The notes under the pieces were generated by a model. The model was given only the letters and a program-made list of their open reading frames with translations, did no database searches and was not told the DNA's origin. Below, one piece after another: positions 4,401-48,223 of a DNA stretch of 64,000 nt (positions are counted from its first letter, which is position 1; each line of letters starts with the position of its first letter). A program made the position numbers and the translations under genes. The stretch is from Diplonema japonicum (lineage: Eukaryota; Protista; Euglenozoa: Diplonemea). The DNA is taken from contig OZ025711.1 of NCBI GenBank assembly GCA_964019335.1, forward strand, positions 124,001-188,000, in the 5' to 3' direction.

Positions 4401-4492
4401 TTTAAAGAGGTGACTTTGAAGTTCTCCTGTGATGTTGAAGTAAGAGGTCGAAGTACCAATAAATACAACAATAACTTATTACTAGAATTAGA

Positions 4493-4909
4493 TCAAAGAG
4501 TAAACCCAGAGACATCCTTCGAAAGAGGATACAAGCATGCGATACCGCCTGCCTTGTCATAGAAGCTTCTGGTGACGTCCTTTCTGCAGTAGGGGGGGAG
4601 GATGCCGTGTGCGGGTTTGGGAGAAGACCTTGCCCTGACTGAGCGGCGTCCACAGGGCACGCCCCAACCAATGGGGTGGACCTTCATCTCACCGGGGGGC
4701 TCTTTCCTCCTGGCCGAGGTGGCACGGGGTCTACTGCGGGTTTTTTCCTTAACTACCACTTTCAGGTCATGCTGTCTCTTTCTCTCGTGTTCGTGCTTGT
4801 GTCGCGACTCCTGTTTGAAAACCTCTCGTAAGAGAGATTGCGACGGCACCGTGTGCCCCCCACATTGCAACATATTCAAACCTCTGAATGCGTGTTGGCA
4901 ACGAAACAT
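4493..4909 (-). CDS. Small basic hypothetical protein (138 aa)
   Basis: ATG-initiated ORF on the cluster strand. It fills the PFR-ATP2 interval, lacks the homopolymer runs typical of local non-coding DNA, and has a CTCTCTCAG candidate acceptor just upstream. No recognisable domain. Confidence 0.4.
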   Translation of the reverse strand: MFRCQHAFRGLNMLQCGGHTVPSQSLLREVFKQESRHKHEHERKRQHDLKVVVKEKTRSRPRATSARRKEPPGEMKVHPIGWGVPCGRRSVRARSSPKPAHGILPPYCRKDVTRSFYDKAGGIACLYPLSKDVSGFTL

Positions 4910-21950: not shown

Positions 21951-22814
21951 CAAGTTCACAACTAGTCCACAAGTCCGGAAACTCAAGAATCTTCTTTTCC
22001 TGAGTCCAAGGTGGATAACGGTACCTCCCCTAGCGGGTTGCTCCTCATGTTGGAGTGGTGGGTGACGCCTCACCTGAGACAAGACTATGTAAAGGTGTTG
22101 GCCGGCCTTGAGCCATTGCACTCCCCAACGGTAGTCGTGATATCATCACCCTGACATGAAACCCCCTTTTAAACTGTCGGGCCAGTGTTGCTGCGGTTAA
22201 CGCCCTCAGGGCCCACAGTAAACACCGTCACACCGCTGGGTCAAGGTGTGCAGCCTGTAAAGGACGTCGCTGGCTTACTCCAAGGTACCTATATTTCAAA
22301 ACCTAGAGTAATGGTGACACTCCCACCGGCGCGGTGAGATGGAAAACTGTGCACTCCCCACCCACTCACTCCCACCCAAGTCACTATTAGCTAACACAAA
22401 TCAAGCAAAGTAGTGGCATGTGCGTGCATTCGAGACGTATAAAAGGGAGGCCAGTTCTCTCAGGCGGAATTCGTCAACATGGCAGGCCAAAGACATCAGT
22501 AACTACAAATGCAGCGGTGTACCGTGTACCGTATCGTATTGGTGATGTTAGCTATTTGTTCGAACAGATGAATGACTCAACGCGACACAACGATGACGCA
22601 AAGCAACGCGATGACAACGTAACATGACGCAATGCACTGCACAACGACACAACACCTGTACCAAAACTCTCGTCAAATGAATGCTAACTGTTATTATTCT
22701 TTTCGTTTTTTTCTCTAAAATTCAATACACATCATTCAGGAAACAAAAAGAAAAAAAAAGAAGGAAAGAGTAAAAAAAAAATTTCCTTCATTAGGAGTGC
22801 GCACAGCTCCTAAG

Positions 22815-28800: not shown

Positions 28801-31800
28801 CGACGGAAGCGATCTGCGACCACGACACGGACTGCCACTGGGACCCCACGGGGTGCGAGGGCTGCAAGGAAAAGTACTGCTACAAGACGTTCACCGACGA
28901 CGCGAGCTGCAATGCCGACCCGAAGGGGACGTGCATGTGGGACTCCGCGAACAACAAGTGTGTAGACAAGACGTGCGACTCATACAACAATCCTGCGATG
29001 GGCCCCGACAGGATGTGCGACTGCCAAGCGGACTCGAGGTGCGTGGTGGACCGCTCTGTGCCTACCGCCCCTGTGTGCAGGGACCAGCACTTCACGCAGT
29101 GCCCGGACCTGGACGTGGTGGTGGCCTTCGACGGGTCAACATCGATGAACAACAGGTTCGGGACGCACCCCAACGGCTTCGAGGGGCTCATGGAGGCCCT
29201 AAGGGACTGGGTGCAGGCGCTCCCCCTCACTGGGGAAGCGGCCGGCGTGACCTCGACCGACACCAACGGAAGGGTGAGGGTTGGGTTCAGCGAGTGGGAC
29301 CAAGGAGTGAGGCTGGCGGAGTGCCCCGCCTGCGCTTGCAGCCCTGCTGTGGGCTCAGATGGCGACGGCATCCCCACCACGAGCAGCATGAACACGAAGG
29401 GGAAAACCCCTCCCCGCCCCGCCGACAAATGCGGGAAGCTCACCGGTAACAAAGCGCAGCTCCTTGCTGACTTGGACTGGCACGAGGGCGAGAAGCGCCG
29501 ACCGCAGACGCTGGTGAAGGAGGCAGAGGAGTTTGCAGGGGAGACCTTCAAGTCTTCCCCCGCTTACAGGAAGAAGATCCTCCTCATCTTCACAGATGGC
29601 ATGATCCAGGACAGGTCCTCCCTGGGGCCCGCTGGTGCTATTCTTGCTGCAGAGGGTGTACAGACCTTCGGGATTGTGCTGACAAGGGGTAACCCCAACT
29701 TCCTGGACCAGAGGAACCTAGACGCTCTCAAGGAAATCGTCACCGACCCGAAGGACAGCCATGCCCTGATGATGCAGATCGACGAAGCTCACAAGGTGCT
29801 TGATGACTTCTGCGACCCGAACAGCGTGTTCGGAGCACTCATCACCAGTGGCTCCACCACGAAGCCCAACACGGAGCCTCCCTGTGACTCTATCCAGAGT
29901 ATCCCTGACTGCACGGCACGTGCGACTTGCCAGTGGAATTCGATCACTGTGGCCTGCGAGGACCACCCCTGCTTCAAGCACTGTGGTGAGACAGACTGTG
30001 TTGCGGACACGACGAACAAGTGCAAGTTTAACAACGGGACTCTGCAATGTGAGAAGACTGTGTGCAAGGACCACCTCAACCAAAAGGAGTGCGTTGACAA
30101 CGATTGCAAATGGGACGCTGCAAAGAATCCCAGGTGCGACGAAGGCCCTTGCCAGGCAACGGACCAAGCAGCATGCAACAACCTTGGAAAGCAGTGCACT
30201 TGGGACACGACGATCCAACCCGACCCGAAGTGTGTGGAAACTCCTTGCTACTACGACAACCAGACAACATGCGAGGTAGACACTGACTGCGAATGGGATG
30301 CTGCGTGCCCTGACGCTGCAGACCAGAAGTGCGTGCCGAAGAGGTGCTCTCAGCCTGACCACCAATCGCAGGCGGGGTGCGTAAAGGACACTTGGTGCGT
30401 GTGGACGAGCTCCCTCACTTGCGAGCTCGGGAAGTGTGCGAAGTACCCGACTGAGAAGTGCTGCGACCACGACGACAACTGCCACTGGGACATCACCTCC
30501 AGCCCTCCTGTGTGCGGAGAGAAGTACTGCCCCAAAACCTACCCGACCCAGGCTACGAAGGACCAGTGTGACGCCGACAGCAAGTGCATGTGGGACTCCG
30601 GTAAGCAGGCGTGTGTGGAGGAGGATTGCAGCAAGCTGGACAAGTGCCCGTGCAGGGCACACCCCGACTGCTACTGGGACGCTGCTCACAACAAGTGCAC
30701 GGACGCGAAGTACGGTGAGTGCCCTACGATGGACGTGATCATGCTGATGGATGGGTCTGGCTCGATGGATGCCTGGTTCGGGAATCACCCGCACGGCTTC
30801 TACGGGCTGATTGAGATCCTGAGGGACTGGGCAAAGACCCTCCCCCTCACAGGAGAGCTGGCGGGGACCAACACTGGTCCTGGTCCTGCCAAGGGCGGTC
30901 TCAGGCTTGGGTTCGTGCAGTTCTCTGGCAGCAACCCCTGGTGGTGGTTCTCTGGGACACCGAAGGCGATCCAAACCCCATCGGGTACGGGTTCTAGTGG
31001 GCACCTGTCGGGTGACCTAACTCAGATCAACCAAGATTTGGACTGGCACGAGGCCAACTACATGGGGGACGGCACCATGATCGAGAAGGGGTTGACGATG
31101 GTGGGAGACATGTTCGATGCCTCGCATCAGCACGCTGTACGCCCCAGGATCCTCATCATCTTCACGGATGGGAAGATCTACGACCCTAACTCCTTGGGTC
31201 CCGCAAGGACAGTGCTGGACCAGGAGGATGTGCAAACCTTCGGTATTGTGATAAGGAAGCAGCAGGCGCACACTAAGGCTGATGTCGACGCAGAGGCCAC
31301 GCTTAAGCCCATCACCTCGGACCCGCATGATGACCATTTCCAGAACCTCATGCTGGACGAGATCTCGACCAAAGTGCTGGGCGACATTTGCGACCCCAAC
31401 GGGAAGTTCGGACACCTCATCGTGAAGAACTCTCCCTCGACGCAGGCCGGTGTGCACGCTCCGTGCCCCAACCACGCCGACTCGCACCTCTGCAACGCCG
31501 ATCCCGGTTGCGAGTGGCACGCCGCAAGCAACGAGTGCCAGGACTCCCCGTGCATTGCGCACTGTGACGAGCAGTCGTGCATCAAGGACACGGCGAACCT
31601 GTGTAAGTGGAACGGGACGGAGTGCTGGAAGGAGACAAAGTGTGCCTACACAGACCAGACTCAGTGCGTGAACTCTCCGGACCTCTGCGTGTGGGACAAC
31701 GGGGTGTGCGTGCTGCCCCCTTGTACCCCGAACAAGAACCAAGCCGACTGCGAAGCTGACAAGGACGGCTGTGCCTGGGTAAACCAGAACGGGCAGGACG

Positions 31801-34800
31801 TGTGCATTGTGGAGCCCTGCTCGTCGACCTACCAGTCTGTGTGCAGCTCCGACCCGGCATGCAAGTGGGACTACCCTCTGTGCGGGAACACCACGCAGCT
31901 GCAGTGCATGCCCAAGGGCTGTGACTACTTTGCCGCGAAGGGGGACTGCGACGCCGATGTGCACTGCGTGTGGGACGCCGCGGCCTCCACCTGCAAGGAC
32001 CGGGTGTGCGCGCAGTTCAGGGACGAGAGGTGCTGCGACAAGGACCCGATTTGCAAGTGGGATGCAACTACCGCCCCCGCGGTCTGCTCGCAGAAGAAGT
32101 GTCCGGCGATCCAGAAGCAGCCGAAGTGCGACGAGCAGAGCGACTGCATGTGGAATTCAACAACGAACAAATGCGTGGACTTGGACTGCAGCAAGTTCCC
32201 TGACATGTGCCCGTGCAACCAGCACGACAAGTGCTACTGGAAACCCGGTGCAGGTTTCGCTGGGACCGGTGCCTGCGTGGCGATTGAGTTCGGCGAATGC
32301 CCCACCCTCGACATCGTGCTGGTGCTGGACGGGTCAGGCTCCATGTCTGCGAAGTTCGGGAACCACCCTCACGGCTTTGACGCTTTGATGGAGATGATGA
32401 GGGACTGGATCGAGACCCTGCCCTTGAACGGGGAAGACGCCTCTGTGGGGATCAAGTCGAAGAAAGACAACGGCGGAGTGCGCGTGGGTATTGTCCAGTT
32501 CTCTGGATGGAACAATTGGAGGAGCGAAGCCAGGAAGACCCCTGGTGGGAAGGGATCTGGCGGAAGACTCACTGGTAAGCTGCAACAGCTGGAAGACGAC
32601 GTGGACTGGCACGAGGACAACTACATGGGTGACGGGACCATGATTGAAGAGGGTCTCACGATGGCGGCCGACATGTTCCACGCTTCGCCTGTGGACGGGA
32701 GGCAGAGAGTGCTCTTTATCTTCACAGACGGGCAGATCTACGACCCGAACTCCCTTTCTGGTGCGAGGGCGGAGCTAGACAAGGAGGGTGTGCAGGTGTT
32801 CGGTATCGTGGTGAGGAAGGCCACCAAGCACACGAAGGCGGATCTTGACGCTGAGAAAACGCTGAAGCCGATTACCTCTGACCCGCACGACGACCACTTC
32901 AAGAACGTCATGATCGACGAGGTGCCCGACCTCATGAAGGGGATCTGCGACCCGAACGGCCCTTGGGGACACCTCATCGTGAAGGACCCTCCTCAGCCTT
33001 CGAGCGGCGTGCACCTTCCGTGTCCAGACTACCAAACCCAAGGGACCTGCAAGAAGGATCCCGGGTGTATCTGGTCTGACGTTGGTTCTGTGTGCCTGAA
33101 CTCCCCATGTCTGCTGCACTGCAACGGCTCGGCGTGCCAGGGTGACCCGAGCAACAACTGCACCTGGGTGAACGGCAGCATCTGCACGAACGCCCCAGAC
33201 CCCACATGCGACTGCGCATACACCACCGGGGACCCCGTGTACAACGAGAAGATGTGCAAGGCAGACGCCATGTGCGTGTGGGACGCTGCGAACAGCGTGT
33301 GCCAGCATGACGAGTGCGCGGCGGGGCAACCCGGGAACCTTACCTGCGGTGCTGTGAACCAGCTCTGCATGGACCCCACCCCTGCACCGTGCACGGACGA
33401 CTACTACTGCGACTGTGTGCCACCCGCGACGAGGGACCCGAAGACGCAGCCCGGACAGGTGGCGGCGGTGTGCGTTCTCGACGAGTGCGCTGTTGATTGC
33501 CCCACCTGCGCTGGGACAACGTGCAGCGACAAGAACCAGGACTGCTTTGACCCCACCCCCACCGTGACCAGCTTGAGCGACTGGACCTGCACCTGTAAGC
33601 CGCCCTACACGGGTGTGGCAGTGGCGAACGCCGCTGTCTGCCAGGTCGACGAGTGCAAGGACCAGACCTGCAGCACCTGCGCAAAAACCACCTGCAGCGA
33701 CAAGAACCAGATTTGCCACGACCCGGACACCACGGTGTTGAGCGACTGGACCTGCACGTGTCCCCCGCCCTCGAACCAGAGCGCCGTAGCCGCCGCTGTG
33801 GTCAGTTGCGACTTCGACGAGTGCACCATCCACAAGGACACCTGCGAGAACGCAGACCAAACTTGCCACGACCCCGACCAGTCTGTGACCGGGGACTGGA
33901 CCTGCACCTGCAAGGCGCCTTCGAATGGCACCGCCACCGCGCAGGTTGCTTGGTGTGAACTCGACGAGTGCGTGAAGACCTGCCCGAGCTGTGCAAACAC
34001 GACCTGCACGGGAGAAAACCAGCTTTGCGACGACCCCAACAAGGCATCGCACTCCACTGGGGACTGGACCTGCACGTGTCAGAACCCCTTCACGGGCTCG
34101 GCCACCGCCGCCGCCGCGATCTGCAAGCTGGACGAATGCTCTGCCCTGTGTACTGGGACCACCTGTGCCAACGCAACGTGTTCGAACGTGAACCAGACCT
34201 GCCATGACCCCGACTTCACGAAGCTGGGGGACTGGACGTGCAACTGCCCTCCACCCTCGAAGCAGCCGCCCTCGCCGCAGCAGCCGGTGATGGGGTGCGA
34301 GGTGAACGAGTGTGACCTGCACAAGGTGGTGTGCGAGAACCAGGGCCAGATCTGTGAGGACCCCGACCAGCTGGTCGCTGATGACTGGAAGTGCAAATGC
34401 GTGCCCCCCATGAATGGGACCGCCACGGCCCAGGCTGCGGACTGCACGATCGACGAGTGTGTGGCAAGCTGCGCTACTTGTGCGAACGATACCTGCAGCA
34501 GCGAGGGCCAGACTTGCGAGGACCCGGACATCTCGATGCACTCCACAGCCGACTGGACCTGCACATGCCCGCCCCCTTTCACCGGGGTGGCCATTGCGAA
34601 CTCTGCGACCTGCCTTCTCGACGAGTGCGCGGCCAACTGCAGCGAACCGTCATGCGCAGGTACCACCTGCAGCGCGAAGAACCAGACTTGCCACGACCCC
34701 GACACCTCAACGCTGAACGACTGGACCTGTACCTGCCCCCCTCCATCGCAGCAGCCACCTGTTGTAGGAGCGCCTGTGACGGGCTGCGAGGAGAACGAGT

Positions 34801-37800
34801 GCGACAAGATGAAGCAGATTTGCGAGAACGTCGGGCAGACCTGTGACGATCCCGACCAGCTCACCCCCAACGACTGGGAGTGCAAGTGCACACCGCCGAT
34901 GAACGGTACTGGGGTTGCCAAGCCCGCAGAGTGCACCCTTGACGAGTGTGCTGCTGACTGTGTTGGCCCGACCTGTGCGAACACCACCTGCTCGGATGCC
35001 AACCAGGTCTGCAATGACCCCGACACCGCTGTTCACTCCACCGGTGACTGGACCTGCACGTGCCCGTCTCCGTATGCTGGTGTGGCCATTGGGAGCGCCG
35101 CCGTCTGCCGCATCGACGAGTGCGTGGAGACCTGTCCGACCTGCGCGGACAACGCTTGCTCGAATGCTACGCAAATCTGCAATGATCCCGACACGAGCAA
35201 GCTCAGCGACTGGACCTGCTCGTGCCCTCCTCCTGCCCAGAAGCCGTCTCAAGTGGGGGGTCCTGTGACCCCCTCGTGCGACGTTGACGAGTGCGACTTG
35301 CACAAAGACACCTGCGAGTCGCAGCAGCAGACCTGCTTCGACCCGGACCAGGCTAAGGCCGGCGACTGGCAGTGCAAGTGCACACCCCCAATGAACGGGA
35401 CTGCCACAGCGCAACCTGCGGAGTGCACGATCGATGAGTGCGTGGTGAGCTGCGCCACTTGTGCGAACGACACCTGCAGCAGCAAGAGCCAGACCTGTGA
35501 GGACCCGGACACTTCGATGCATTCCACCAGCGACTGGACCTGCACCTGCCCGCCGCCGACCACGGGCAAGGCTGTGGCCAACTCTGCCGAGTGTGTGATC
35601 GATGAGTGCGTAGAGACCTGCCCTACGTGTTCCAACGGAGTCTGCTCCGCGGAGGGCCAAACCTGCCATGACCCCAACGTGGCGGCGAACAGCACAGGCA
35701 ACTGGATCTGTACGTGCCCGCCTCCTTCCACGGGCTTCGCGACCGGGAAGGCCGCGACACCTTGTGTTGTTGACGAGTGCAAGGACCCCGACAACGAGAA
35801 GAAGTGTGCGGACGCCGGTCAGGAGTGCGTGGACCCCAACCCCTCATTGGGCAGCCGCAATGACTGGGAGTGCCACTGCATCGTCCCACCCGCCATCAAG
35901 ACCGCATCGGCGGTGATGAACCCTGCTGAGTGCGAATACCCTGGTGAGTGCAAGACGGACCCGGAGGCCAAGAAGTGCGTTGCGGCCGGCCACATCTGCG
36001 ACGACCCCAACACCGACCCTATGTCCACAGGAGACTGGGTCTGCATGTGCCCTCCTCCTTCGACCGGCACCAACGTGACCGCCACCACTCCCGGCGGTGT
36101 CGCTGGGATGGTGTGCGAGACGGACGAGTGCGTGGTAGTCTGCCCGACCTGCGCGCAGACCGCGGGCAGCCCCACGAACCTCTGCACCGCCGAGGGGCAA
36201 GAGTGCAGGGACCCCGACAAAACAAAGTACGGCGACTGGCAGTGCGAGTGCCCGACACCGTGGACCGGGACCCCTGTCACAGGCGGTGCCGCGAACTGCT
36301 CTCTCGATGAGTGCGTTGCCACCTGCCCATCGTGCTCGAAGGGGGCGTGCTCGGACGAGGGGCAAACCTGCAAGGACACCAACACCGGTGTGCACGACCT
36401 GAACGACTGGATCTGCACGTGTCCCCCGCCTGGTGTGGGGAGCGCGACGGCGAAGCCGGCGACCTGCGTCTGTGACGAATGCAAGGAGGCGGACCAGAAG
36501 TGTTCCGCGGCCGGACAGATCTGCTTCGACCCGAACACCGCCTGCGACAGCACGAAGGACTACACCTGCGAATGCAAAGCCCCCTACAGCGGGACGGCCA
36601 CCGCCCAGGCGGCCACTTGCGAGGTCAACGAGTGCAAGGAGAAAAACGCCACATGCACGGCTGTGGGCCAGATCTGCAACGACCCCGACCTGACCAAGCT
36701 CGACGACTGGGAGTGCAAGTGCCCGCCCCCCAGCACCGGGATGGCGGTGGGACAGGCAGCGTCCACCTGCAAGCTCGACGAGTGCGTTGAGACGTGCCCC
36801 ACGTGTGCGGGAACGACGTGCTCCGACGCGGACCAGACCTGCACGGACCCCAACACGGACGCCTCGAGCACGGGCGACTGGATCTGCACCTGCAAGCCCC
36901 CTGCAGCGAACAACTCTGCAACGGGGAAACCTGCGGTCTGCATCTGCGACGAGTGTGTCGGAGACACCCTTTGCGCTGGTGCGAACCAGTCTTGCTACGA
37001 CGCGAACACCGCATGCAACACGCCGTCGGACTTTGTTTGCGAGTGCGAGCCCCCGATGATCGGGAACGCCACCGGATCTGTCGCTATGTGCTCCCTCGAT
37101 GAGTGCGAGATTAACAGCGCTACGTGCATTGCACAGGGACAGGAGTGCAACGACCCTGACCACACGAAGGCCGGGGACTGGGAGTGCAAGTGCAAACCGC
37201 CGAGCGTCGGGAACGCGACGGCGCAGGCTGCGGAGTGCGTGTACGACGAGTGCAAGATCCAAGACTGCCCGACGTGCGCGAACAACACCTGTGGGTTGCA
37301 GGACTGCGAGGACATGAACACCAGCCCCACGAGCACCAGCGACTGGGTTTGCAAGTGCCCTCCTCCGTCGAACCACACAGCCACGGGGAAAATGGCAGTG
37401 TGCGACCTCGATGAGTGCAAGGATCCTGTGAATGCCGGGAAGTGCACAGAGGCGTGTGTGCCTGGGACCCTGGACTGCGGGCAGACCTGCTACGACCCGA
37501 ACCCCACGACCGTGAGCACAGGGGACTGGGAGTGCTTGTGCCCTCCCCCAGCGACCGGAAAGATGGTTGCTGGCCCTGTGGTGCACTGCACCTACAACGA
37601 GTGTGACGAGAAGGAAACTGTCTGTGCGGCGGAGGGACAGGAGTGCGAGGACACAAACCAGCAGACGCTGAACGACTGGGTTTGCGAGTGCCTGCCCCCT
37701 GCAACGGGGAACGCTACCGTGCGACCGGCGAGGTGTCTGCTTGACGAGTGCAAGGTCCAGAACTGCCCCACGTGCGCGAACGACACCTGTAAAAGTGTCG

Positions 37801-40800
37801 GACAGGAGTGCGAGGACCCCGACACGACTGCCACCAGCACCGGCGACTGGGTCTGCAAGTGCCCGCCGCCCTCGACCCACCAGGCGACGGCGAAGCCCGC
37901 AGTTTGCGAGATCGACGAGTGTGACGAGCCGCAGAACAACTGCACCGCAAACTGCGTTGCCCCGAATACCCCGAACTGCGAACAAACCTGCTTCGACCCG
38001 GACACCTCGCCTACCAGCCTCGGAGATTGGACCTGCAGCTGCCCCCCCCCCACTAAGGGGAAGGTTGTGGCTCATGCAGCGATGTGCACCGTCGACGAGT
38101 GCGTCGAGCACGGTGCAACCTGTACCGCCGAAGGGCAGACATGCACGGACCTCAACACCAGCAGGCTAAACGACTGGGAGTGCGTGTGCACGGACCCTGC
38201 GAAGGGGTCGGCGGTCGCACAGAAGGCAACCTGCGTGCTCGACGAGTGCGTTGAAGACTGCGACACCTGCTCGAAGAACACCTGCAAGGACGCTGGGCAG
38301 ACCTGCGAGGACCCGAATACGTCAGAGTCGAGCAAGAGCGACTGGATCTGCAAGTGCCCGTCGCCCTCGAAGAACACAGCGACCGGGAAGCCCGCGACCT
38401 GCGAGGTGGACGAGTGCAAGGAGAACGGATGGAAGTGCACCGCCGACTGCAAGGGGGCGTTGAACTGCGCCCAACTATGCTTCGACCCGAACACCAACTC
38501 CACGAGCCTGGATGACTGGAAGTGCGTGTGCCAGCCTCCGTCGACGGACTCGGCTGTGACGAAGGCTGCGGTCTGCACCGTTGAGCCGTGCATCCACGAT
38601 AACGAGCCTGCCTGTGAGCAGGACCCCGATGGCTGTGAGTGGTCGCTGCTCCCGACGCCCGTCTGCAAGCCGATCCCCTGCCAGCACACTAAGGAGGTAG
38701 ACTGCAAGTCGGAGACCGGCTGCGAGTGGCTCGTCTACTCGGGGGCGTCAACGAACGCTGGAACGGGGGCTGTCTCCTACGAGGTGCTGGTGCCCGTGAA
38801 GCCGTTCCCCGCTGCGACGTGCGACGCCAGCTGCTCATGCACTGCGCAGAACGCGGTGTTTGTCCGCATCGAGGGCGGCTACGTGAATGGGAAGGACTCT
38901 CTCGCCTGCGGTGGCTGCGCTGCTGCGGGCGTGACTGTGAACTGGCAGGCAGCGGAGGGTTCCCTGACGGTGAGCGGCGGGTCCGGGGTGAGTGGCGACA
39001 AGCTCGCGGAAATCGTGGCCAGCATCGAGTTCACCACCTCGTCGACAGACGGCGGGAAGAGGAGCCTTACTTGGAACTTCGGAACGACCCAGAACACGGC
39101 GGCTGCGGCGACCGCCTGCGGCGGGATGGTGGACCTCGTGGGGGGCGTGTGCGTGACTGAGAAGTGTGACTACGACACCGACGCGAAGTGTGAGGCGGAC
39201 CCGTTCTGCGACTGGGTTGGCGGGACGACCGACCCCTGTGTGATCGCCCCGTGTGTGCTGTACCCGAACGAGAAGGAGTGCTCGAAGGACCCGGACTGCC
39301 GCTTCGACGTGAGCAGCTCGCCCGCCATGTGCAAGGAGAAGCCGTGCAGGGCCTTCAAGGGCCCTGCGGAGTGCAACGCAGAGGACGAGTGCATGTGGAA
39401 CGCAACGCAGACGAAGTGTGTGGAGAAGGAGTGCAGCAAGTTCAACGACGACCGCTGCAAGTGCCACGCGGAGGACAGGTGCTACTGGGACGTGCGCTCC
39501 ACGGTCCCGAAGTGCGTGGAGAGCAAGTACGGGCAGTGCCCCGTGTTGGACGTGGTGATGCTGCTGGACGGGTCCGGCTCGATGAGCGAGGCCTTCGGGC
39601 GCCACCCGCACGGCTTCTACGCCATGATGGAGATGATCCGGGACTGGGTGAACACGTTGCCCCTCACGGGGGAGGACCACACAGTCGGGAAGGCGTCGAC
39701 AGCCCCGAACGGCGGACTCCGAATGGGGATCATCCAGTTCTCTGGTCCTGTCCCTGAGGCGGTGAAAACCCCTGTCGGGGTTGGGTCCTCGGGTTCCCTG
39801 ACCGGGGATTTGACGGAGCTGCAAGGGGACATCGACTGGCACGAGGCAAACTACATCCAGGGGAGCACTTTCATCGCGATGGGGCTGAACTGGGCCGGGA
39901 CCATGTTCCAGTTCTCCCCGTCCACGAGGCAGAAGGTACTCATCATCGTGACAGACGGAGCAATCAAGGACACGGCGTCCCTCGCCCCCGCGAAGGCAGT
40001 CCTCACTGCGGAAGGAGTGAAGATTTTCGGGGTGGTGCTGAGGAAAGCTGCGGCGCACACGCAAGAGGACCTGGACGCGGAGGCGGCGTTGAAGCCGATC
40101 ACCTCGGACCCGCACGACGATCACTTCATGAACGTGCTGATCGACGATATGCCGGACCAGGTCCTGAACGGGATCTGCGACCCGAACAGCAAGTGGGGAC
40201 AGCTCCTCATGCCCGGAGCGTCGAGCGAGAACCAGGCTGGGATGCACAAGCCGTGCCCGCAGCACCTGGTGCAGATGGAGTGCACAACGGACCCCGGTTG
40301 CGTGTGGAGTAGCGTAGGCCTGTCGTGCGTAGACTCCCCTTGCGTGGCGCACTGCGACAGCACGAAGTGCACGGCCGACACGGTGAACCACTGCGAGTGG
40401 AAGGTGGTGAACGGGACGACGGATCCCTCCTGCTGGGTGGAGACAATCTGCGCCTACAACGATGAGACCACGTGCGAGGCGGACGACCAGTGCGACTGGG
40501 ATGCTTCGAAGCCTGACTGCGTGGAGCGCCCGTGCAACCAGCAGACTGAGACAGAGTGCGAAGCGGACCCGAAGGGGTGCGAGTGGACGGCGGCAACGAA
40601 AACCTGTGCGGAGAAGCCGTGCAAGCACACAGTGGAAGCGGACTGCGGTGCCGATGCCCTCTGCGAGTGGGACGCCTGCGCGGGGGTCGCCGGGGGCGGT
40701 GCCTGCCAAAAGAAGAGCTGCGACCCGACGGTCTTCACGGATGAAGTATCTTGTACGAAGGACACGCGGTGCCAATGGGTGAGCGGTGTGACCGGTTTCA

Positions 40801-41728
40801 CCTGCGTGCAGGAGCTGTGCGCCATCCACTCCGGGGAGAGGTGCTGCAACACGGAGGTGGACTGCCACTGGGACATCTCTGTGTCCCCCGCGCAGTGCAG
40901 CGTGAAGCACTGTGCGAAGATGAACGCGAACCCGGCGAAGTGCGACAGCGACAGCCCGTGCGTGTACGAGGGTAGCAAGTGCGTAGAGAAGGAGTGCGGG
41001 AAGCTCGCGGAGTGCGAGTGCAGGAAGGACGCGGACTGCTACTGGAACGGGGATAAGGACTTCTGTACCCCGTTCCAGTTCGGGCAGTGCCCCACGCTGG
41101 ACCTGGTGCTCTTGTTGGACGGGTCAGGGTCGATGAGCCAGTCCTTCGGGCGCCACCCGCACGGTTTCGACGCTATTATGGAGATGGTCAGGGACTGGGT
41201 GACGACGCTGCCCTTGAGCGGGGAGAAGGGAATTGTCGGAGTAAACTCGCAGGCGAACAGCGGGAAGGTGCGTGTGGGGATCATCCAGTTTTCTGGAATA
41301 AACGCTCAAGGAGCGGACCCCGGGAGGGCGGACGCTCAGGCAACCCCCGCTGGGATCGGCTCCTCCGGGAGTCTCACCGGGGACCTCGCAGAACTGAACG
41401 CCGACATCGACTGGCAGGAGACCAACTACTACGGTGGCGGGACCATGATCGCGAAGGGGCTGACCGACGTGGCGCAGATGTTCCACGCCTCCCCGAACGA
41501 CGGGAGGCAGAGAGTGCTCATCATCATCACGGACGGGCAGGTCTTCGACCCGGACACCCAGGCCGTGCTGCAGGCGCGCGGGGAGCTCGATAAGGAGAGG
41601 GTGCAGGTGTTCGGGGTGGTGGTGAGGAAGGCTACCGCGCACACCGCGATTGACGATCTCGCGGAGCAGACCCTGAAGCCAATGGTGTCGGTGCCGAAGG
41701 ACGACCACTTCCAAAACCTCATGATCGA
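22815..41728 (+). CDS. Giant secreted/surface adhesin-like protein, N-terminal part (>6300 aa), truncated by the assembly gap
   Basis: Uninterrupted 18.9-kb ORF. Signal-peptide-like MHRPLMMLSLTASCYA; Ig-like domain ~22970-23190; C-type lectin ~23217-23795 (WIG, EPN, WND); 7 vWA domains with MIDAS DxSxS starting near 25206, 27192, 29100, 30720, 32298, 39537 and 41088; many C-x5-C-x4-CxW repeats; roughly 35-40 EGF-like DEC...C.DP...DW.C.C repeats at ~33310-38580. It ends within vWA7 at the N gap. ATG 22815 is preferred over GTG 22797. Confidence 0.95.
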
Positions 41729-41928
41729 NNNNNNNNNNNNNNNNNNNNNNNNNNNNNNNNNNNNNNNNNNNNNNNNNNNNNNNNNNNNNNNNNNNNNNNN
41801 NNNNNNNNNNNNNNNNNNNNNNNNNNNNNNNNNNNNNNNNNNNNNNNNNNNNNNNNNNNNNNNNNNNNNNNNNNNNNNNNNNNNNNNNNNNNNNNNNNNN
41901 NNNNNNNNNNNNNNNNNNNNNNNNNNNN
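41729..41928. other. Assembly gap (200 N)
   Basis: Run of exactly 200 N. The true gap length and the orientation of the flanking contigs cannot be determined from this window. Confidence 1.
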
Positions 41929-42093
41929 GGGTTTTGCGGGTTTGCGGGTTTGCGGGTTTGCGGGTTTTGCGGGTTTTGCGGGTTTTGCGGGTTTTGCGGG
42001 TTTTGCGGGTTTTGCGGGTTTTGCGGGTTTTGCGGGTTTTGCGGGTTTGCGGGTTTGCGGGTTTGCGGGTTTGCGGGTTTGCGGGTTTGCGGG
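41929..42093 (+). repeat. Telomere-like tandem repeat (TTTGCGGG/TTTTGCGGG) x19, running into the gap
   Basis: Ten 9-mers and nine 8-mers in blocks of 1, 3, 9 and 6, with a sharp boundary to unique sequence at 42094. Confidence 0.95.
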
Positions 42094-44168
42094 CGACCCA
42101 GGCCCACGCCCCCAGGTGCTCCCATCTCACCCCTTCCTTGCTGTGTCCCGTCCGTCTGCGGTGCCTCCTTGTGCCGGTTGCAGCCCCAGGTGCCGGGATT
42201 CTGGGTGCCAGGGGTTGGGCTCCAGGCGTTCCCACCTCGGTCCGCTTCAGCCCCATTGCAGGGTCATCTGGCTTCTGTTCCAGGGCGGCCTCGTGTTCCT
42301 CTCTGCGGGCTCTCCTCCTCCCTTCTTTCCTCGCACGACGGTGCCTTTTCTTCTCCTGTCTGGCAGCCTCCCTCGCCCCCTCCCTCGCCTTGGTCCTCTT
42401 CTCCCGACGCCTCTGAAGGGCCGCTTCGCTCCTGTGCCTCCTCCTGTTCTTCTTCCGCTTGGGCGCTGGCTTAGGTTCCCTGCCACCCATGGCAATCCAG
42501 GGGGCTCTTTTCTGTCTTCTCACAAGGGTGTGCAGTGGTGCTCTCACGTCGCTCGCAGCCTCCGCCCCAACCACACCTTGGCGGGCGGTGGGGGTGGGTG
42601 CTGGGTCCCCCTGGTTGTTTGAAAAGAAAAAAGGTTCCTCCTTGTTTGTTTTTTTTTTTTCTTTCCCTTCCACCCTCAAAAAAAGCCCCCGGCCCTTGGG
42701 GACCAGGGTGTACACCTCCGTAGAGGGTCCAGAAAAAATGGGGGGCAGAGAGGGAGGGGCACTACCTTCTCTCGGGCGTGCTGTCTCTCCCTCTGCCTTT
42801 TTTTCCTCCGAAGAGGGTCTGTTTTTCACCTCCGTGGAGGGTCCCTCTGGAGAGGGCTCTATAAAAGAAAAAGGGGGGGACGAATGGGGGGGAGGAACAC
42901 TACCCTCTCTCGGGAGTGCCACCTCTTCCCCTCTCTCTCTGTTTTCCTCCGAAGAGGGTCTGTTTTTTACCTCCGTGGAGGGTTCCTCTGGAGAGGGCTC
43001 TAAAAATGAAAAAGGGGGGGACAAATGGGGGGGAGGAGCACCACCCTCTCTCGGGAGTGCCACCTCTTCCCCTTTCTCTCTATTTTCCTCCGAAGAGGGT
43101 CTGTTTTCCTCCGAAGAGGGTTCTAAAAAAAAAAGGGGGGCGGGTGGGGCACTATCCTCTCTTGGGAGTGCCACCCCCCCTTGCCCACAAAAAAGGGGAT
43201 CTAAAAAAGGGGGTTCGTCTGTTAACCCAGGGGATGGGTCTTCCTGGGGTGTGCGGGTGAGCTTGGGGCCTACCGCACGCAGGGTGATCGACACCCTGAC
43301 ACCAGTGGACATCCCGGACGGGATGTGGTGCGTCCACTGGTGTCTCGCTTCACCTTCCAACAATGCCCATGAGAAGGGGGGCACCAGGTATTTCGCCACC
43401 CTGTCCCCCCTCCTCATGACCATTGTGGTCTCGGCTCCGTACGAGAGGACTAGGACAATCGGTCCCAGCCTCGCGTCGTCCTTGTGGGCGGCAATCCCAC
43501 AACCAGACTTGTACTTGTTGACAAGTACCTGGTTGGGGACCACCTCGAGCCCCGGCGGCGGCCACCTCCCTCACCCACCCCTCCGCCCCCCCTGGGATCC
43601 CCGTGGTGGGGCGCACCTTGGCGTTCGTCCCCTCCCACCGGTACCCGTATTGGAGGGTCTCCCTCCCTGAGTTCCCAGACAGGGCCTCCCACTTTCCTGA
43701 AAGCAGGGCTTTCGGGAAGGCAGGGGCCGGGCCCGTCCTCAACCCGGGAGGGTGTTCACCATACACCAGTACCCACCCCTTTTTTTCTCCCTCTTTTCTT
43801 CCCTCTTCAACAATAGCAGGGTCGGCTGCAGGGGTCGTGGTCGCGGCGGTCGTGGCTGCGGCAGGGGCGGCTGCGGCGGTCTCAGTTGCGGCGATCAGGG
43901 CGGCTGGGGCGTTCAGGGCGGCTGGGGCGGCCGTGGCTGTAGCAGCGGCGGTCAAAACCGCGGTCTCTGCTAGTGATTTTTTTATTTTATTTTTTTTTTC
44001 TAAAGGGGGGTGGGGGGATCTAGGGGGTGGGGGTGGGGATTCATACTGCCCAACCAGATAGTCTGGTTGGGTCGGCCCTGGCGTCGTGTGCAGCCTGGCG
44101 GCCTGTCGGGGTTCCTTCTCCCTGCGGTTTGCGCGGTCACCTCCTCTTGCGTTCCGTCTTGGATCCAT
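42094..44168 (-). pseudogene. AlkB-family 2OG-Fe(II) dioxygenase-domain ORF (~690 codons) with one frameshift near 43552
   Basis: Frame 1 gives KWEALSGNSGRETLQYGYRW...WVREVAAAG. Frame 2 gives LEVVPNQVLVNKYKSGCGIAAHKDD...LGPIVLVLSYG...FSWALLEGEARHQWTHHI...RVSITLR, i.e. an intact HxD...H triad and RxSxTxR. Removing one G from GCC-GGGG-CTC fuses the frames. The domain is flanked by an Ala/Thr-rich N-terminus, Pro/Glu/Ser repeats and an Arg/Lys-rich region. Confidence 0.85.
42760..43180 (-). repeat. ~141-bp (47-codon) coding tandem repeat, about 3 copies
   Basis: EVALPREG..PPP...PPFSF.EPSPE.PSTEVKNRPSSEE units; ttttcctccgaagagggtctg recurs at ~42802, ~42942 and ~43083. Confidence 0.85.
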
Positions 44169-44340
44169 TTTTTATTTTTTTTATTTTTTTTTAAAGTGTG
44201 TGTTGGGGGAGGGGATCCTTTCGGTAAGCGGCGGGCAGGCCGACAGGCAAAACAACCCCCCCGGACGACGGCGACGACGGACGACGGACGCAGCAGCAAA
44301 CCCAGGCAGAGGCGGCAGGCACCAGCAGAACACGAACGAC

Positions 44341-44378
44341 CAATAAAGTACAGAAACTGTAGCTTTAGAATCGTTGGT
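44341..44378 (-). other. Spliced-leader (mini-exon) sequence embedded in genomic DNA
   Basis: The minus strand reads ACCAACGATTCTAAAGCTACAGTTTCTGTACTTTATTG (38 nt). It has the euglenozoan-conserved 3' half ACAGTTTCTGTACT(T/A)TATTG. It differs from the Diplonema SL as I recall it (AACCAACGATTTAAAAGCTACAGTTTCTGTACTTTATTG) by 2 substitutions and a missing first A. Confidence 0.93.
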
Positions 44379-44402
44379 GGGGGGGGGGGGGGGGGGGGGG
44401 GG

Positions 44403-45071
44403 ACCGCGCCCGAGCCCCTCGAGATTGATTCGCCGGAGGTCAGTGGGAACAGGGGTCTGGCGAGGAAGAGGGTGCCCTCGAATGAGGCTCAGTCCGCCCA
44501 GCGGACCCCAAAAGTGAAGAAGGGTCGCGGCCAGCTGGACGTAAGAGAGTCGAGCCTGGCCGCTGGCATGCGCGTGCTGTTCGGAGCGGTTCCGCCCCCT
44601 TCCCTGACCCCCTTGGCCGTGGGTAGCAGGCCGCCGCAGGAGGAAGGCGAAACGGCGCAATCTCCCATTCCGGGGGCGAGCGGTGCAGGGCTCTACTCTC
44701 CAGAGGCGAGGTTCCCGGAGGCGCCCGTGGTGTCCATGGCCGCGGACCTGTGCGAGTCGGACGGGATGGAGGCACATTCGGCCCCCTCCGGTGTGGACAG
44801 AGAGCCTTCGCCCGCTCGTCCGTCGCAGTCTCCCGTGCTGGGGGCTGAAGGCGGGGGGCGCCTCTCTCCGGAGGTCAGTACCCCAGAAACCTCCAACCCC
44901 GATGTCCGGGTAGAGGGCGGGGAAAAGGTCGCCAGAAAAAGGGTACCTTCCCACGAGACCCAGTCGGCCCAACGCGCCGCTAAGGTCGGGAAGGGCCCTG
45001 TCCAACGAGATGTGAGGGGGCCCCAGGGTGGTCGATCCACCCCCCTGGGCTCGCAAGGGCCCAGGGCTTGA
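44403..45071 (+). pseudogene. 5'-truncated coding fragment (Pro/Ser/Glu-rich, internally duplicated motif)
   Basis: The frame is open from the G24 tract to TGA 45071. The duplicated motif RKRVPSNEAQSAQR / RKRVPSHETQSAQR differs mostly at third codon positions. Confidence 0.55.
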
Positions 45072-45252
45072 GCAGCCAACATTAAGGGTTCCTGAGGGAA
45101 GCCCTCTTTAGAATTCCCCCCCCCTTTTTTTTTTTTTTTTTTTTGCAAGAACGAGTCTTTGACTTGTCTAAACAAAAGGGGAACGTTGGCAACGTGTTTC
45201 GGGTTGACAAACTTCTCCAGGTTTTACCCGGCACGTACAAACAACGGCCAGT

Positions 45253-45291
<39 letters not shown>

Positions 45292-46568
45292 CCATTACAA
45301 CAAAACGACAAAGGGGAAAAAAAAAAAAAAAGAAAGTTAGCAAAAGAAAAAAAAAAGGGGACCGGGAGTTTTCCCCCTGAAGTTCCTTTGTTAAAACATG
45401 TTTGCTGTTGGGTTTCCGTTTCTTTTCTTTTTGGTTTAACTAGGAGTTTTCCTTCTACAGCTTGTTTGCTGATGGTTTTGAGTTGATTCTTTTTTATTTT
45501 TTATCTTATGGTTTAACTAGAAGTTTTCCTTCTACAGCTTGTTCGCTGACGGGTGGGTTTATCAGGCGGGCTTCCATAGCTGGTGACCTATGGAAGCCTT
45601 CCCAAATTTTTTCTTTTTTTCAGGCCGGGCTGGGGAAGGACGGCAAGACCACCAACGGAGGAGAAACCGCTGCAGAAAGGGGAAAGGTGCAGGAAGACGA
45701 AGAGGACGAGAGGGCGTCTCACAAAGACTCCCTTCAATTCATATATCTTTTATTTTCTTTTTATTTTTCTTTTCTTTATTTTCTTTCTCCCAACCCTACC
45801 CCCCCTCGAAAAAAAAAAAGAAAAGAAAAGAAAAGATTCATTCCTCCCTAGTTTATTATATTTTGCATCAGGTTCGCCGAGAAAATAAAAGGAAAAACAA
45901 GGAAAGAGAACGGCAACCAAATTTTAAATTTTTATTTTATCATCAAAGGAGGTTTGAAAAAGAGAAAAATTAAAGAGAAGAAAGAGACCTTTTTCTCCTC
46001 TATCGATAAGTGATTCACGAACTCGAATCTTTATCACCACTTTTTTGTGCATGCCAGATTTTTTTTTTTCTCCCGCCTTGTTAGAGAAGTTTTAATTTAC
46101 TAGTAAAAAAATAAAAAAAGTGAAAAGAGGAGTAGAAGACGATCCGGTGGGGGGCATGGGAACCATAAACCGTGTCTTCCATCGCGATCGGCAAGGCGGG
46201 GGCTTTTCCGTCCCATGGGTGAAAAGAGGCGGATAAAATCACTATTCCGGACCCCCCCCCAACACTGAGCATGCACTTTTTCCCCATACATACCTCTCTC
46301 GTTTATCAAAATATCACCATTTTTACGGCGGACGCCAAGAAAAAAAGCCAAGGAGAAGGAGTTTAGGGAGTAATTGAAAGACCTACGGCCCCAAAGAAGG
46401 CGGTGAAAACAGCCATGGTGGGCCAGCCCTGGCAGACAGGGAGCCTGAACACCAAGAACACCGCGGAGCCAAATTTGCATCCGGAATTTTCGGTTTTCAA
46501 ACTTACAAAAACCCCCTGTAGGCATCTGCGTCCGTCCAGCCCCATTTTGGCACCCCTTTTGGGTGCGG

Positions 46569-46600
<32 letters not shown>

Positions 46601-46620
46601 AAAAAGAAAAAAAAAAAAAA

Positions 46621-46860
46621 GGAAAACTACAGTGACCACAACGTTGAGAAAGTAGCACTAGTTGGTGCTGTAATGGAAGAGTGGAACGGGCGCGAGGACA
46701 GGCTCATGCGAACACTCGAAAAGAAGTACAACACGAGATTCTTCCAAGACCGTGGCCTTCTATCCATGCCATATGCACGGGCAGCGTCGAGCTCCCAGAT
46801 GCACACTCCGATGCGACTCCGCGAACCGGAGACCTTACTGGACAAAACAGAGGCTTTTAT
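46621..46860 (+). pseudogene. Gene fragment with a small protist helical-domain-like motif, between poly(A) runs
   Basis: YSDHNVEKVALVGAVMEEWNGREDRLMRTLEKKY resembles the Y..NP.K...V..I...Y.GRE..L...L..KY motif I recall from protist proteins. It has no start codon of its own upstream of the motif and is bounded by A tracts at 46569-46620 and 46862-46880. Confidence 0.4.
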
Positions 46861-46891: not shown

Positions 46892-47518
46892 CTATCTGGC
46901 CTGGCCGTTGTAGCACCTGTTCCCTATTCTTTTATTTTTCCCTTTTTTTTTTCTCAGAAAATTCAACCCGGGGGGGTGCTCACCATCTTTCAGTATCCAC
47001 CCTTCCCCCTTTTTCTTCTTTTTTTTTTCCTCTTCAACTATGGCAGGGTCGGCTGCGGAGGTCGGGCTTGCGGCAGGGGCGGCTGCGGCGGTCTCAGTTG
47101 CGGCAGGGGCGGCTGCAGCGTTCAAGGCGGCAGGGGCGGCTGCGGCGATCGTGGTTGTGTCGGTCGTGGCTGCGGCAGGGGCGGCTGCGGCGTTTGGGGC
47201 GGCAGGGTCGGCTGCGGCGTTCAGTGCGGCTGGGGCTGCTGCAGCAGTCGTGCTTGCGGCCGGGGCGGCCGTGGCTGTAGCAGGGGCTGCTGCTCCCTTG
47301 GTTGTGGCGGTCAAAACCGCGGTCTCTACTTGTGATTTTTTTTTTTTATTATTTTTTTTTTCTAAAGGGGGGTGGGGGGATCTAGGGGGTGGGGATTCAT
47401 ACTGCCCAACCAGATTGCCTGGTTGGGTGGGTCTCGGTGCCGTGCACTGCGGGCTGCGGGCTTGCTCCTGCGGGCTGCGGCTGCGGTCACCTCCTCCTGC
47501 GAGTCGTCTTGGATCCAT
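46892..47518 (-). pseudogene. Truncated second copy of the AlkB-element ORF N-terminus
   Basis: MDPRR..GGDR...PTQP..LVGQYESPPP.RSPHPPLEKKN..KKS..ETAVLTA...AADPAIVEE...GW....GEHPPGL aligns with 44168-43739. Homology stops at ~46963, just before the AlkB domain. Confidence 0.85.
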
Positions 47519-48223
47519 TTTTTTTTTTGTTTTACCACCAATGCTCCATACGCCCCCTGTTGCCAGTTCGCCAGATGAGCATACTGCAGGGACTTCCACT
47601 CATCCGTTGCCCGGTGGGTACCACGAGGAGGTCAGCAACAATTCTATACTTTTGGCCACGTTGGGCCTGTTCTACATTTAGTATAGTCCCACCTGGAATC
47701 GGGGGGGGGGGGGGGGGGGGGGGGGGTGTTTGGCTGCAGCGGAAGGCTGCTCGGCAAGCTCATCGGTGTCACCACGCCTGCTCCAGCCGTCGGGACGAAG
47801 GGCACCAGACTGTGTTTTTCTGCTAGTATTGCAGCACCACCTCTGGCTGGCATTTTATTTTGAATACTCGCCTGTATTGGCCTCCGAGCTGCGATAGCAA
47901 AAAAAAAAAAGAGGGGGGGAAAGGAAAAAACAGGAAGTCAGACAAAATAAAGGAAGTCAGGTATTAAAACTCAAAACTCAGCAGTAGCGAGGATGGAAAA
48001 AAAAGAGAGAGGTAGACAAAGGATTAAGATAGGGAAGAGTGGGAAAAGACAAGTAAAACTGGTGTGGTAGACCGGTTGGTGTTGATGGCAGTTATGATGC
48101 CAGTTAATATGGTGGACAGAGAAGACAACACAGCACACCAGTGAGCAGCCAGGACAGAAAAACAAGAGGAATAAAGATGAATTGCGGAATTGGGAAGGAA
48201 GACAGTTTGTGCTATTATATGTT

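Follow-up and report, generated by a model that had tools for sequence, protein, structure and literature searches.

A truncated copy of a spliced-leader-headed, AlkB- and OTU-carrying LINE of the chromosome ends of Diplonema japonicum

Why should a spliced leader (SL), which mRNAs receive by trans-splicing, be encoded in genomic DNA immediately in front of an AlkB coding sequence? This question is raised by a 2309-nt stretch (positions 42094–44402, minus strand) in DNA of the diplonemid Diplonema japonicum. The window, that is the whole stretch of DNA analyzed, comprises 64,000 nucleotides (assembly GCA_964019335.1, contig OZ025711.1, positions 124,001 to 188,000), and window positions are counted from its first letter. 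A preliminary description made from the letters alone had proposed a multicopy, SL-carrying retroelement. The feature is real: it is a truncated, frameshifted copy of a leader-headed R2/CRE-like long interspersed element (LINE) which carries AlkB and OTU domains and populates the chromosome ends. With high probability this copy, damaged at two points, is a dead member of a retrotransposon family of this diplonemid that is telomere-associated and lacks long terminal repeats (non-LTR).

The 5' end of the window copy was read directly from the minus strand. A homopolymer of 24 C residues (44402–44379) is followed by ACCAACGATTCTAAAGCTACAGTTTCTGTACTTTATTG (44378–44341), which represents 38 nt corresponding to nt 2–39 of the host SL; the SL RNA genes next to the 5S rRNA gene have the same exon sequence. 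Very few bases distinguish it from the 39-nt Diplonema leader. The 19-nt 3' part of the SL occurs once in the window, compared to 0.01 expected occurrences. The leader is joined directly to a 172-nt 5' untranslated region (UTR; 44169–44340) which starts with GTCGTTCGTG and is GC-rich, then A-rich. The C tract, the 38-nt SL and the 172-nt UTR had been described before and were borne out by our reading. An ATG at position 44168 opens a frame of 272 amino acids (43350–44168, minus strand) that encodes an Ala/Pro-rich N-terminus and the first half of AlkB and then meets a stop codon. The AlkB (2OG-Fe(II) oxygenase) domain as a whole lies at approximately 43277–43676 and retains the HxD, H and RxSxTxR motifs, but it is split by a frameshift. 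Its C-terminal half is found in a second frame (PF13532, E 9e-9, profile positions 93–194 only), which it shares with 2.5 tandem repeats of 141 bp (42752–43107, from repeat analysis) encoding Pro/Ser/Glu-rich repeats, and with a Lys/Arg-rich basic region (approximately 42290–42470 in the translated frame).

Comparison with other copies and with read-derived contigs located the damage at a 2-nt deletion (CA on the minus strand) at about 43552 (43552–43553). The two missing bases are present in the copies L035 and L043, both of which have an unbroken AlkB domain, and TG is inserted behind 43552 in every contig of three sequencing runs (X2, X3 and X7). The intronless AlkB open reading frame (ORF) reported in the preliminary description therefore stands with regard to the AlkB domain, the repeats and the basic region, but not as a single intact ORF. 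A further length difference concerns the Ala-rich N-terminal region, where many copies are 9 bases (GTCGGCTGC, plus strand) longer than the window copy at window position 43907; the difference reflects a short repeat whose length varies without loss of frame.

Position 42094, formerly taken as the limit of the element, turned out to be the point where it is cut by telomere-type repeats. A search of the genome, 132 pieces with 62.5 Mb in total, placed the 2309-nt stretch at no fewer than 40 scored positions (261 candidates) with 97–99% identity. In 13 of 13 other copies the sequence runs on beyond the 3' junction of the window copy, and other copies extend for 7 kb more. The full-length copy L035 (left end of contig C75) is a unit of about 9.6 kb, which extends from the leader to ...CTCAAGTCCCCCTTTTTAAAAAAA; the window element (42094–44378) is 98.7% identical to its positions 1–2223 and represents the 5' 2.3 kb of this unit. 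SL, 172-nt UTR, a long coding region, a 3' UTR and poly(A) follow each other in the element. The coding order in L035 is AlkB, repeats, basic region, a C2H2-like finger, OTU, a second finger, the reverse transcriptase (RT) domain RVT_1 and a CCHC motif with a PD-(D/E)XK-type domain. Frameshift, 3' truncation and subtelomeric setting had been overlooked previously, while the proposal of an SL-carrying multicopy retroelement is confirmed by the fuller copies (97–99% identity), which encode RT and an R2-like endonuclease and possess poly(A) and target-site duplications of 5–6 bp.

The encoded domains were identified in the full-length copies. The AlkB ORF of L035 comprises 325 amino acids with HxD, H and RxSxTxR (PF13532, E 2.2e-14). 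It precedes a 2318-aa frame which contains both OTU (E 4e-12) and RVT_1 (E 2e-16; 7e-17 in copy L041). In copy L043 AlkB and OTU are found in one uninterrupted frame of 1284 amino acids. Among proteins of solved structure, R2 proteins are the best sequence matches of the RT. The model of the C-terminal knuckle/nuclease region (pLDDT 94.5) gave confident matches only to R2 proteins in target-primed reverse transcription complexes (TM 0.55–0.57, probability 1.00), and residues C62, C67, H78, C82, H90, E111, D125, D141 and K171 are nearly invariant among 36 homologues. A CCHC knuckle and a PD-(D/E)XK restriction-like endonuclease (RLE) behind the RT are the mark of the RLE-bearing LINE group (CRE/R2/R4/NeSL/HERO), and the element carries it. 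The C-terminal 678 residues (roughly 680) showed no match in Pfam or the Atlas and no similarity to the UCH-bearing tail of P0292 from D. papillatum.

The AlkB domain belongs to the AlkB family and is a predicted enzyme, as judged from its sequence and modeled structure: a jelly-roll fold, the iron ligands HxD...H and an Arg pair for 2-oxoglutarate. Residues H93, D95, H145, R156 and R162 are invariant. The modeled fold matches ALKBH6 and ALKBH8 at TM 0.7 and furthermore NMAD-1, ALKBH5, AlkB and ALKBH2/3. Jelly-roll fold, HxD...H and RxSxTxR are common to the element domain, the AlkB domains of RNA viruses and ALKBH6/ALKBH8-like enzymes, with ALKBH6, ALKBH8, NMAD-1 and ALKBH5 as the best matches. 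Plant flexiviruses are selfish RNA-based replicons that carry AlkB. A word-index protein search with the 325-aa ORF yielded no match, probably as low-complexity words swamped it; an exhaustive HMMER search with the domain revealed relatives outside Diplonema which are at most about 40% identical. A literature search on AlkB and LINEs found no paper describing AlkB in a retrotransposon. The enzyme may act on the element's own RNA or cDNA.

The element copies itself via target-primed reverse transcription of a polyadenylated RNA, as its variable poly(A) tails, 5' truncations and 5–6-bp target-site duplications show. The 3' tails range from 7 to over 60 A, and 5' truncation is common. Duplications were seen in nested copies, within the coding sequence of the element: L039 is a 5'-truncated copy with a 38-A tail nested in another copy and flanked by TCTGT, and L044 is a 3' stub of roughly 30 nt with a 34-A tail between duplicated GGTAGA. 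Three full-length copies (contigs C75, C31 and C9) are 99.2–99.4% identical over 8 kb and have three different heads. A self-comparison of L035 revealed no terminal repeats, hence no LTRs. The element thus has the encoded RT, the 3' tail and the target-site duplications of a non-LTR retrotransposon, and the window copy is cut before the RT.

The RNA template bore the SL at its 5' end. As suggested in the preliminary description, the genome was searched for the 3' part of the SL. The 24-nt 3' part is present at 226 genome places, compared to none for the reversed control. At 52 distinct SL loci the flanks were read: the leader is followed by at least 20 different downstream sequences, and the upstream DNA is unrelated. 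In 32 of these 52 loci the 5' border lies at SL nt 2 with unrelated upstream flanks, and an A directly before the retro-copied leader occurs at about chance rate. Because retro-copies start at leader nt 2, a leader-headed RNA must have been copied almost to its end; either nt 1 is uncopiable or the RNA starts at nt 2. The RT reaches leader nt 2, so that every DNA copy is headed by the leader regardless of its flank.

The true SL RNA genes form a separate class of 9 loci with the downstream sequence GTACCCAATCTGATCC... and an intron that starts with GTACCCAATC (for example L028, C15:777580-780223, and L011, C4:~650090). They consist of a 39-nt exon, an intron of about 95 nt, a U-rich single strand, a terminal 3' hairpin and a U-run, and are arranged in tandem units of 346–352 bp adjoining the 5S rRNA gene, of which 9 copies are assembled. 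Upstream of them more than 45 nt are conserved, and the retro-copies do not have this sequence. Their fold is far better than that of shuffled sequences (z −3.5), whereas the 5' 210 nt of the element fold no better than shuffles (z −0.29). The upstream region, a GU intron with an Sm-like site, hairpin, U-run, tandem arrangement and 5S linkage are all found at the GTACCCAATC-type loci and not at the window. An Rfam scan of window positions 41900–46000 at E<=1 returned no ribozyme and no SL family, only chance miRNA-type matches. The earlier statement that the SL is followed by no SL RNA intron is therefore correct, and the next 70–80 nt can be ruled out as such an intron because they have no mark of a true SL RNA gene. 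A further locus, L004 (C2:150571), is a retro-copy of unspliced SL RNA, which comprises exon and intron, starts at leader nt 2 and has a foreign upstream flank; on this ground the LINE machinery evidently copies SL RNA too.

How does the element maintain its head? Exact SL|GTCGTTCG junctions were found 62 times in different contexts, and 76 of the 77 UTR-start matches are joined to the SL, which answers the earlier question of a shared junction as opposed to an AG-bearing source locus. The only near-match preceded by AG (C11:439671-439694, AG|GTCGTTTGTGTTCTGGAGGTAC, 2 mismatches) occurs once, as often as in the control, and no match qualifies as a credible AG source. Renewed trans-splicing is nevertheless evident. 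One subfamily has SL|GATCCCC precisely after the UTR sequence GAAAG, with diagnostic changes in common with the A-type copy L012 and with three independent flanks; the UTR of the window copy contains this site as GAAAG|GATCCCC (AG at about 44219/44218). Another family has SL|GTAGAGCGG after CCAG. Tandem SL relics are present at 8 loci, precisely at two SL-internal AGs (SL+TTTCTGTACTTTATTG at 7 loci and SL+CTACAGTTTCTGTACTTTATTG at 1), while the window copy has a single leader. From the subfamily, the family and the relics it follows that transcripts of SL-headed copies are trans-spliced again. The tandem-SL products predicted in the preliminary description consequently exist, and the C tract itself is a junction filler of this one copy. 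The main junction is not remade in this manner because the genomic leader ends with TG, not AG.

With a DNA-encoded leader at the 5' border and tandem relics, the element has the features of SL-tagged retro-copies of the dinoflagellate type. The integration of a full-length cDNA of an SL-bearing RNA, one of three options considered earlier, is best supported, namely by the border at SL nt 2 and the AG-type alternative junctions. The leader would have been gained first by ordinary trans-splicing of an element transcript and would now be inherited with the element. From the proportion of SL-joined matches and the near-match at control count it follows that the head is either regenerated in cis or derives from a master copy missing from the assembly.

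Three other explanations of the locus as such can be weighed against this evidence. A LINE specific for SL RNA genes, as are SLACS, CZAR and CRE or NeSL-1, would leave the SL as the remaining half of a disrupted SL gene, and insertion at the SL exon/intron border had been another of the options considered. The RT-endonuclease relatives of D. papillatum are auto-annotated as SLACS, and the window SL is followed by GT as in the SL gene. However, 49 retro-copies have upstream flanks that bear no relation to the sequence conserved upstream of SL genes, the exon precedes the element whole and is not split, the 3' side is bordered by terminal repeats, by other copies or by unique DNA and never by an SL intron, and target-site duplications lie in non-SL sequence. 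Since, moreover, the true SL gene beside the 5S rRNA gene has another intron (GTACCCAATC...), a U-run and a stable fold (z −3.5), site-specific insertion is very improbable. A variant functional SL RNA gene that stands by chance before an unrelated AlkB gene would account for an exon followed by GT and for the U-rich GUUGUUUUG about 90 nt downstream. It would not account for the lack of the conserved upstream element, terminal hairpin and U-run, for a fold no better than shuffles, or for a sequence that continues into an ORF as part of a 9.6-kb repeated unit with an RT, and we give it hardly any credence. An SL on an intronless coding sequence also resembles a retro-copied mRNA, so that the stretch might be a processed pseudogene derived from a normal AlkB gene of the host, or else a cDNA or assembly chimera. 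Such an origin is scarcely conceivable for a junction that recurs unchanged in at least 62 copies and in different surroundings of a HiFi assembly, for an AlkB sequence that shares its frame with OTU in L043 and with OTU plus RT in D. papillatum, and in view of AlkB relatives outside Diplonema that are no more than about 40% identical.

A more serious competitor, which we consider possible and place somewhat below an even chance, concerns the renewal of the head and not the identity of the element. The SL could be kept in cis as a working module: transcription from, or processing to, the first leader nucleotide, via an internal promoter or start signal or by capture of the SL-gene transcription machinery, would yield an RNA that mimics a trans-spliced, cap-modified mRNA without trans-splicing, and copies would inherit the head. 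The nearly exclusive SL joining without a credible AG source lends weight to this proposal, the third of the options considered earlier. Although the UTRs of families A and A' diverge by about 20–25%, their SL and the junction SL|GTCGT are the same. Repeated trans-splicing should leave tandem relics, which only 8 of the 226 SL loci have. SL-complementary segments lie just past the head in several LINE families; GGTCGTT of the present element pairs with SL nt 4–10, and CCAATAAAG in another LINE family complements the leader. Pr77 of trypanosomatid LINEs, which binds TBP and SNAP50 (PMC8190864), offers a precedent. On the other hand, the conserved stretch of more than 45 nt upstream of true SL RNA genes is missing in retro-copies, which suggests an upstream and not an internal promoter, and the 5' region has no significant structure and no ribozyme match. 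A broader combination appears rather doubtful to us. According to it the SL is a heritable working part, SL-headed copies yield leader-starting RNAs without trans-splicing that pass as mature host mRNAs, AlkB acts on its own template, for instance by demethylating at or near a modified leader cap that stops the RT, copies end at leader nt 2, and all this takes place at chromosome ends with a C-rich 3'-ended strand.

Other arrangements of the leader were also observed. The SL-headed families at L016, L023, L026, L015 and L043:3789-3900 contain CCAATAAAG, the complement of the leader 3' end, shortly past the head, and L026 encodes an RT-like frame. Partial-leader stutters occur three in a row before the terminal array at L024:1690-1780. 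SL+7 nt+SL was found in L037 (rc 4434-4500), and CGATTCTAAACCAACGA stands before the terminal repeat in L049 (rc 6750-6770). These leader chains may reflect repeated template switching of the RT to short RNAs that carry the leader.

The origin of the C homopolymer became apparent from a paralogous flank. Joined to the 5' end of the element is a multicopy subtelomeric repeat, 'U' (44403–46577, plus strand, 2.2 kb), which is 98.8% identical to contig C24:7218-9391. At the position of the tract the uninterrupted paralogue has CCC, followed by more repeat. About 21 C's therefore arose at the junction, and a pre-existing polypyrimidine tract is ruled out. T- and A-runs precede other copies, and homopolymer runs are found at several 5' junctions; they may be fillers added when the cDNA end was joined. 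Contig C24 (positions 1–50000, L031–L033) carries near its left end a 10.66-kb tandem unit which includes repeat 'U' and has A'-type SL heads at 7178, 17837, 28496 and 39079.

Copies accumulate at chromosome ends, pointing outward, in or next to (CCCGCAAA)n and inside one another. At least 62 SL-joined 5' ends and 54 natural 3' ends lie nearly all at contig ends in outward orientation. The 24 SL-joined copies less than 20 kb from a left contig end are without exception minus-strand copies, SL-joined plus-strand copies on contigs of known length all lie within 12 kb of the right end, and the 54 natural 3' ends show the same pattern of position and strand. An 8-mer, CCCGCAAA, with the variant form CCCGCAAAA, makes up the terminal repeat. 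It reads 5' to 3' outward at 15 of 15 contig ends inspected and was seen at L005, L012, L024 and L035–L049 as well as at window positions 41929–42093; TTAGGG arrays were absent from the inspected ends. Because of this direction the 3'-ended strand is C-rich, opposite to canonical telomeres. A telomerase reverse transcriptase candidate (Telomerase_RBD and RVT_1) is located at C41:533974. The outermost copies are cut at arbitrary coding points and capped by the repeat with 0–4 nt of microhomology. At other ends a natural A-tail passes directly into the repeat in one phase, AAAAAAA|CCCGCAAA.

In the window, the array (CCCGCAAA/CCCGCAAAA)n on the minus strand (41929–42093) caps the cut element with 2 nt of microhomology. 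The distal 7 kb of this copy would have been lost by terminal breakage or erosion and the end healed with terminal repeats. For insertion, the endonuclease may nick the G-rich strand of the terminal repeat, whose T-run would prime on the poly(A). End-primed addition as in HeT-A or MoTeR was ruled out, for it would place antisense on the 3'-ended strand. Confinement to ends in one orientation and joining to terminal repeats are found as in telomere-specific LINEs. Insertion solely into the terminal repeat at a fixed site is not, because target-site duplications lie in element coding sequence and 5' junctions in many sequences. Literature searches on the 8-mer repeat and on Diplonema telomeres found nothing relevant, and the genome note on D. 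japonicum YPF1604 is silent on telomeres, leaders and transposons (PMC13598402).

The element body was also detected in sequencing runs: runs from three studies of one organism plus two further organisms hold most of the stretch. Contigs of run X7 cover the body, its SL words exceed the body more than 200-fold in depth, and many sequences are attached to the SL end. This run looks like RNA.

Several observations weigh against the identification of the window stretch as a dead copy of a telomere-associated, leader-headed LINE. The junction of flank, C tract and SL is supported by the HiFi assembly and by 62 equal SL junctions in different flanks, but no read-derived contig crosses it, as contigs break at the homopolymer and at repeats. 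The RNA status of run X7 is deduced from its content and not recorded. A trans-splicing origin of the main junction needs an AG before GTCGTTCG, and the assembly contains no SL-less AG|GTCGTTCG source. Outward orientation fits standard priming only if the G-rich repeat strand runs inward; the assembly shows it so, which is itself anomalous. No copy was seen with a single uninterrupted frame from the ATG to the end: the frame of L035 breaks within the repeats and that of L043 stops after OTU. One long frame can be assumed as the ancestral state because a single frame covers AlkB and OTU in L043 and a single D. papillatum gene model covers AlkB, OTU and RT. Finally, placement in the CRE clade is provisional, as it derives from the 'SLACS' annotation of the D. 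papillatum homologues.

The same order of AlkB, finger, OTU and RT exists in D. papillatum, with 39% identity in AlkB and 46% in RT. There, AlkB, OTU and RT form one gene model (P0271), and models are annotated as 'SLACS 132 kDa protein' or 'tRNA methyltransferase'. Relatives of the RT-endonuclease are 30–46% identical, the named ones being 'SLACS 132 kDa' models of this species; in the paper on its genome, SLACS-like RTs are reported, whereas elements headed by a leader are not mentioned (PMC10161547). A metagenome scan returned mostly transcript-like contigs with the SL at the very end, and two informative ones. L110, a groundwater contig, has a leader-like head before an APE-RT-RNase H LINE frame, and in L101, an environmental contig with a GC content of 70%, such a head precedes an RT frame of 2965 amino acids, the units being arranged head to tail. 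LINEs with an SL head occur beyond the D. japonicum genome and in more than one LINE clade.

Several known systems resemble the element in part. SLACS, CZAR and CRE elements insert inside the SL exon of SL RNA genes, a trait that was not found for the diplonemid element. SLACS, CZAR and CRE1/2 (CRE clade, trypanosomatids) are likewise euglenozoan non-LTR elements tied to the SL, in which the RT is followed by a CCHC knuckle and a restriction-like endonuclease. The D. japonicum element, by contrast, begins with a complete leader, is subtelomeric, is flanked by sequences other than SL genes and additionally encodes AlkB and OTU. The SL-gene specificity of CRE-clade elements has been described (PMC4640811, PMC7367193). 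NeSL-1 and Utopia share the order of zinc fingers, cysteine protease, RT and RLE and a link to small RNA genes (PMC4640811), but their protease is Ulp1-like and not OTU, they insert into SL1 or U2 genes, and they have no AlkB. For L1Tc/ingi elements, the 5'-terminal module Pr77 gives translatable transcripts and binds SL-gene promoter factors (PMC8190864). As a short 5' module of euglenozoan LINEs it is a model for an SL head working in cis; it is, however, not a leader sequence, and L1Tc is an APE-type LINE. Retrogenes with the dinoflagellate leader (DinoSL) also carry a DNA-encoded leader at the 5' end of retro-copied RNAs as well as tandem relics, and their tandem partial leaders result from renewed trans-splicing at a leader-internal AG (PMC6050394, PMC5585692). 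They tag cellular genes and relics are common, whereas here a retrotransposon (and SL RNA) is tagged, single leaders dominate and no untagged source is present.

With regard to chromosome ends, MoTeR (Magnaporthe), FoTeR (Fusarium) and GilM/GilT (Giardia) also combine a SLACS/CRE-like RT with a restriction-like endonuclease, and they form same-orientation end arrays with short terminal-repeat spacers and truncated copies capped by repeats (PMC7367193, PMC12857005). The element described here differs from them by poly(A), the SL head, AlkB and OTU, and it also enters non-repeat DNA. The sense strand is collinear with the C-rich repeat strand in both MoTeR and the diplonemid element. MoTeR 5' ends lie nearest the chromosome end and are truncated there (PMC7367193), whereas here the 3' ends face the chromosome end, because the C-rich repeat strand runs 5' to 3' outward, and the outermost copies are 3'-truncated.

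The surroundings of the window copy contain further features. To its left a 200-N scaffold gap (41729–41928) is entered from the left by a giant plus-strand open frame (22797–41728) of more than 6300 amino acids, containing EGF-like modules, Cys-rich and repeated, as well as VWA-like units. The HiFi/Hi-C genome note of strain YPF1604 reports Hi-C scaffolds that contain gaps (PMC13598402). Right of the gap the contig resembles a normal left chromosome end, and the join of the giant-gene contig to it may be a Hi-C artefact. On the other side, repeat 'U' is followed by an A-run (46578–46640, plus strand). The diverged partial copy reported to lie 3 kb away was recovered as a 75% identical relative on the minus strand (46962–47532), which starts with the same ORF start ATGGATCCAAGACG and has no SL. 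This relative is 5'-truncated, and a second C-run (47701–47726) marks its 5' junction.

An SL-headed, AlkB-bearing LINE of chromosome ends was not described in the literature searched, and in the one other diplonemid genome checked the family is only auto-annotated as 'SLACS' or 'tRNA methyltransferase'. It is a euglenozoan counterpart of the leader-relic phenomenon of dinoflagellates, but on the retrotransposon itself. In an organism whose mRNAs all depend on a trans-spliced leader, the way in which a mobile element acquires a 5' end that can be translated thereby becomes directly testable. AlkB, together with OTU, joins the accessory enzymes carried by LINEs, and its conservation across Diplonema species points to RNA or DNA base demethylation as a step of retrotransposition. 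The chromosome ends of this diplonemid consist of outward LINE arrays and an 8-nt repeat of unusual strand polarity, which bears on telomere maintenance.

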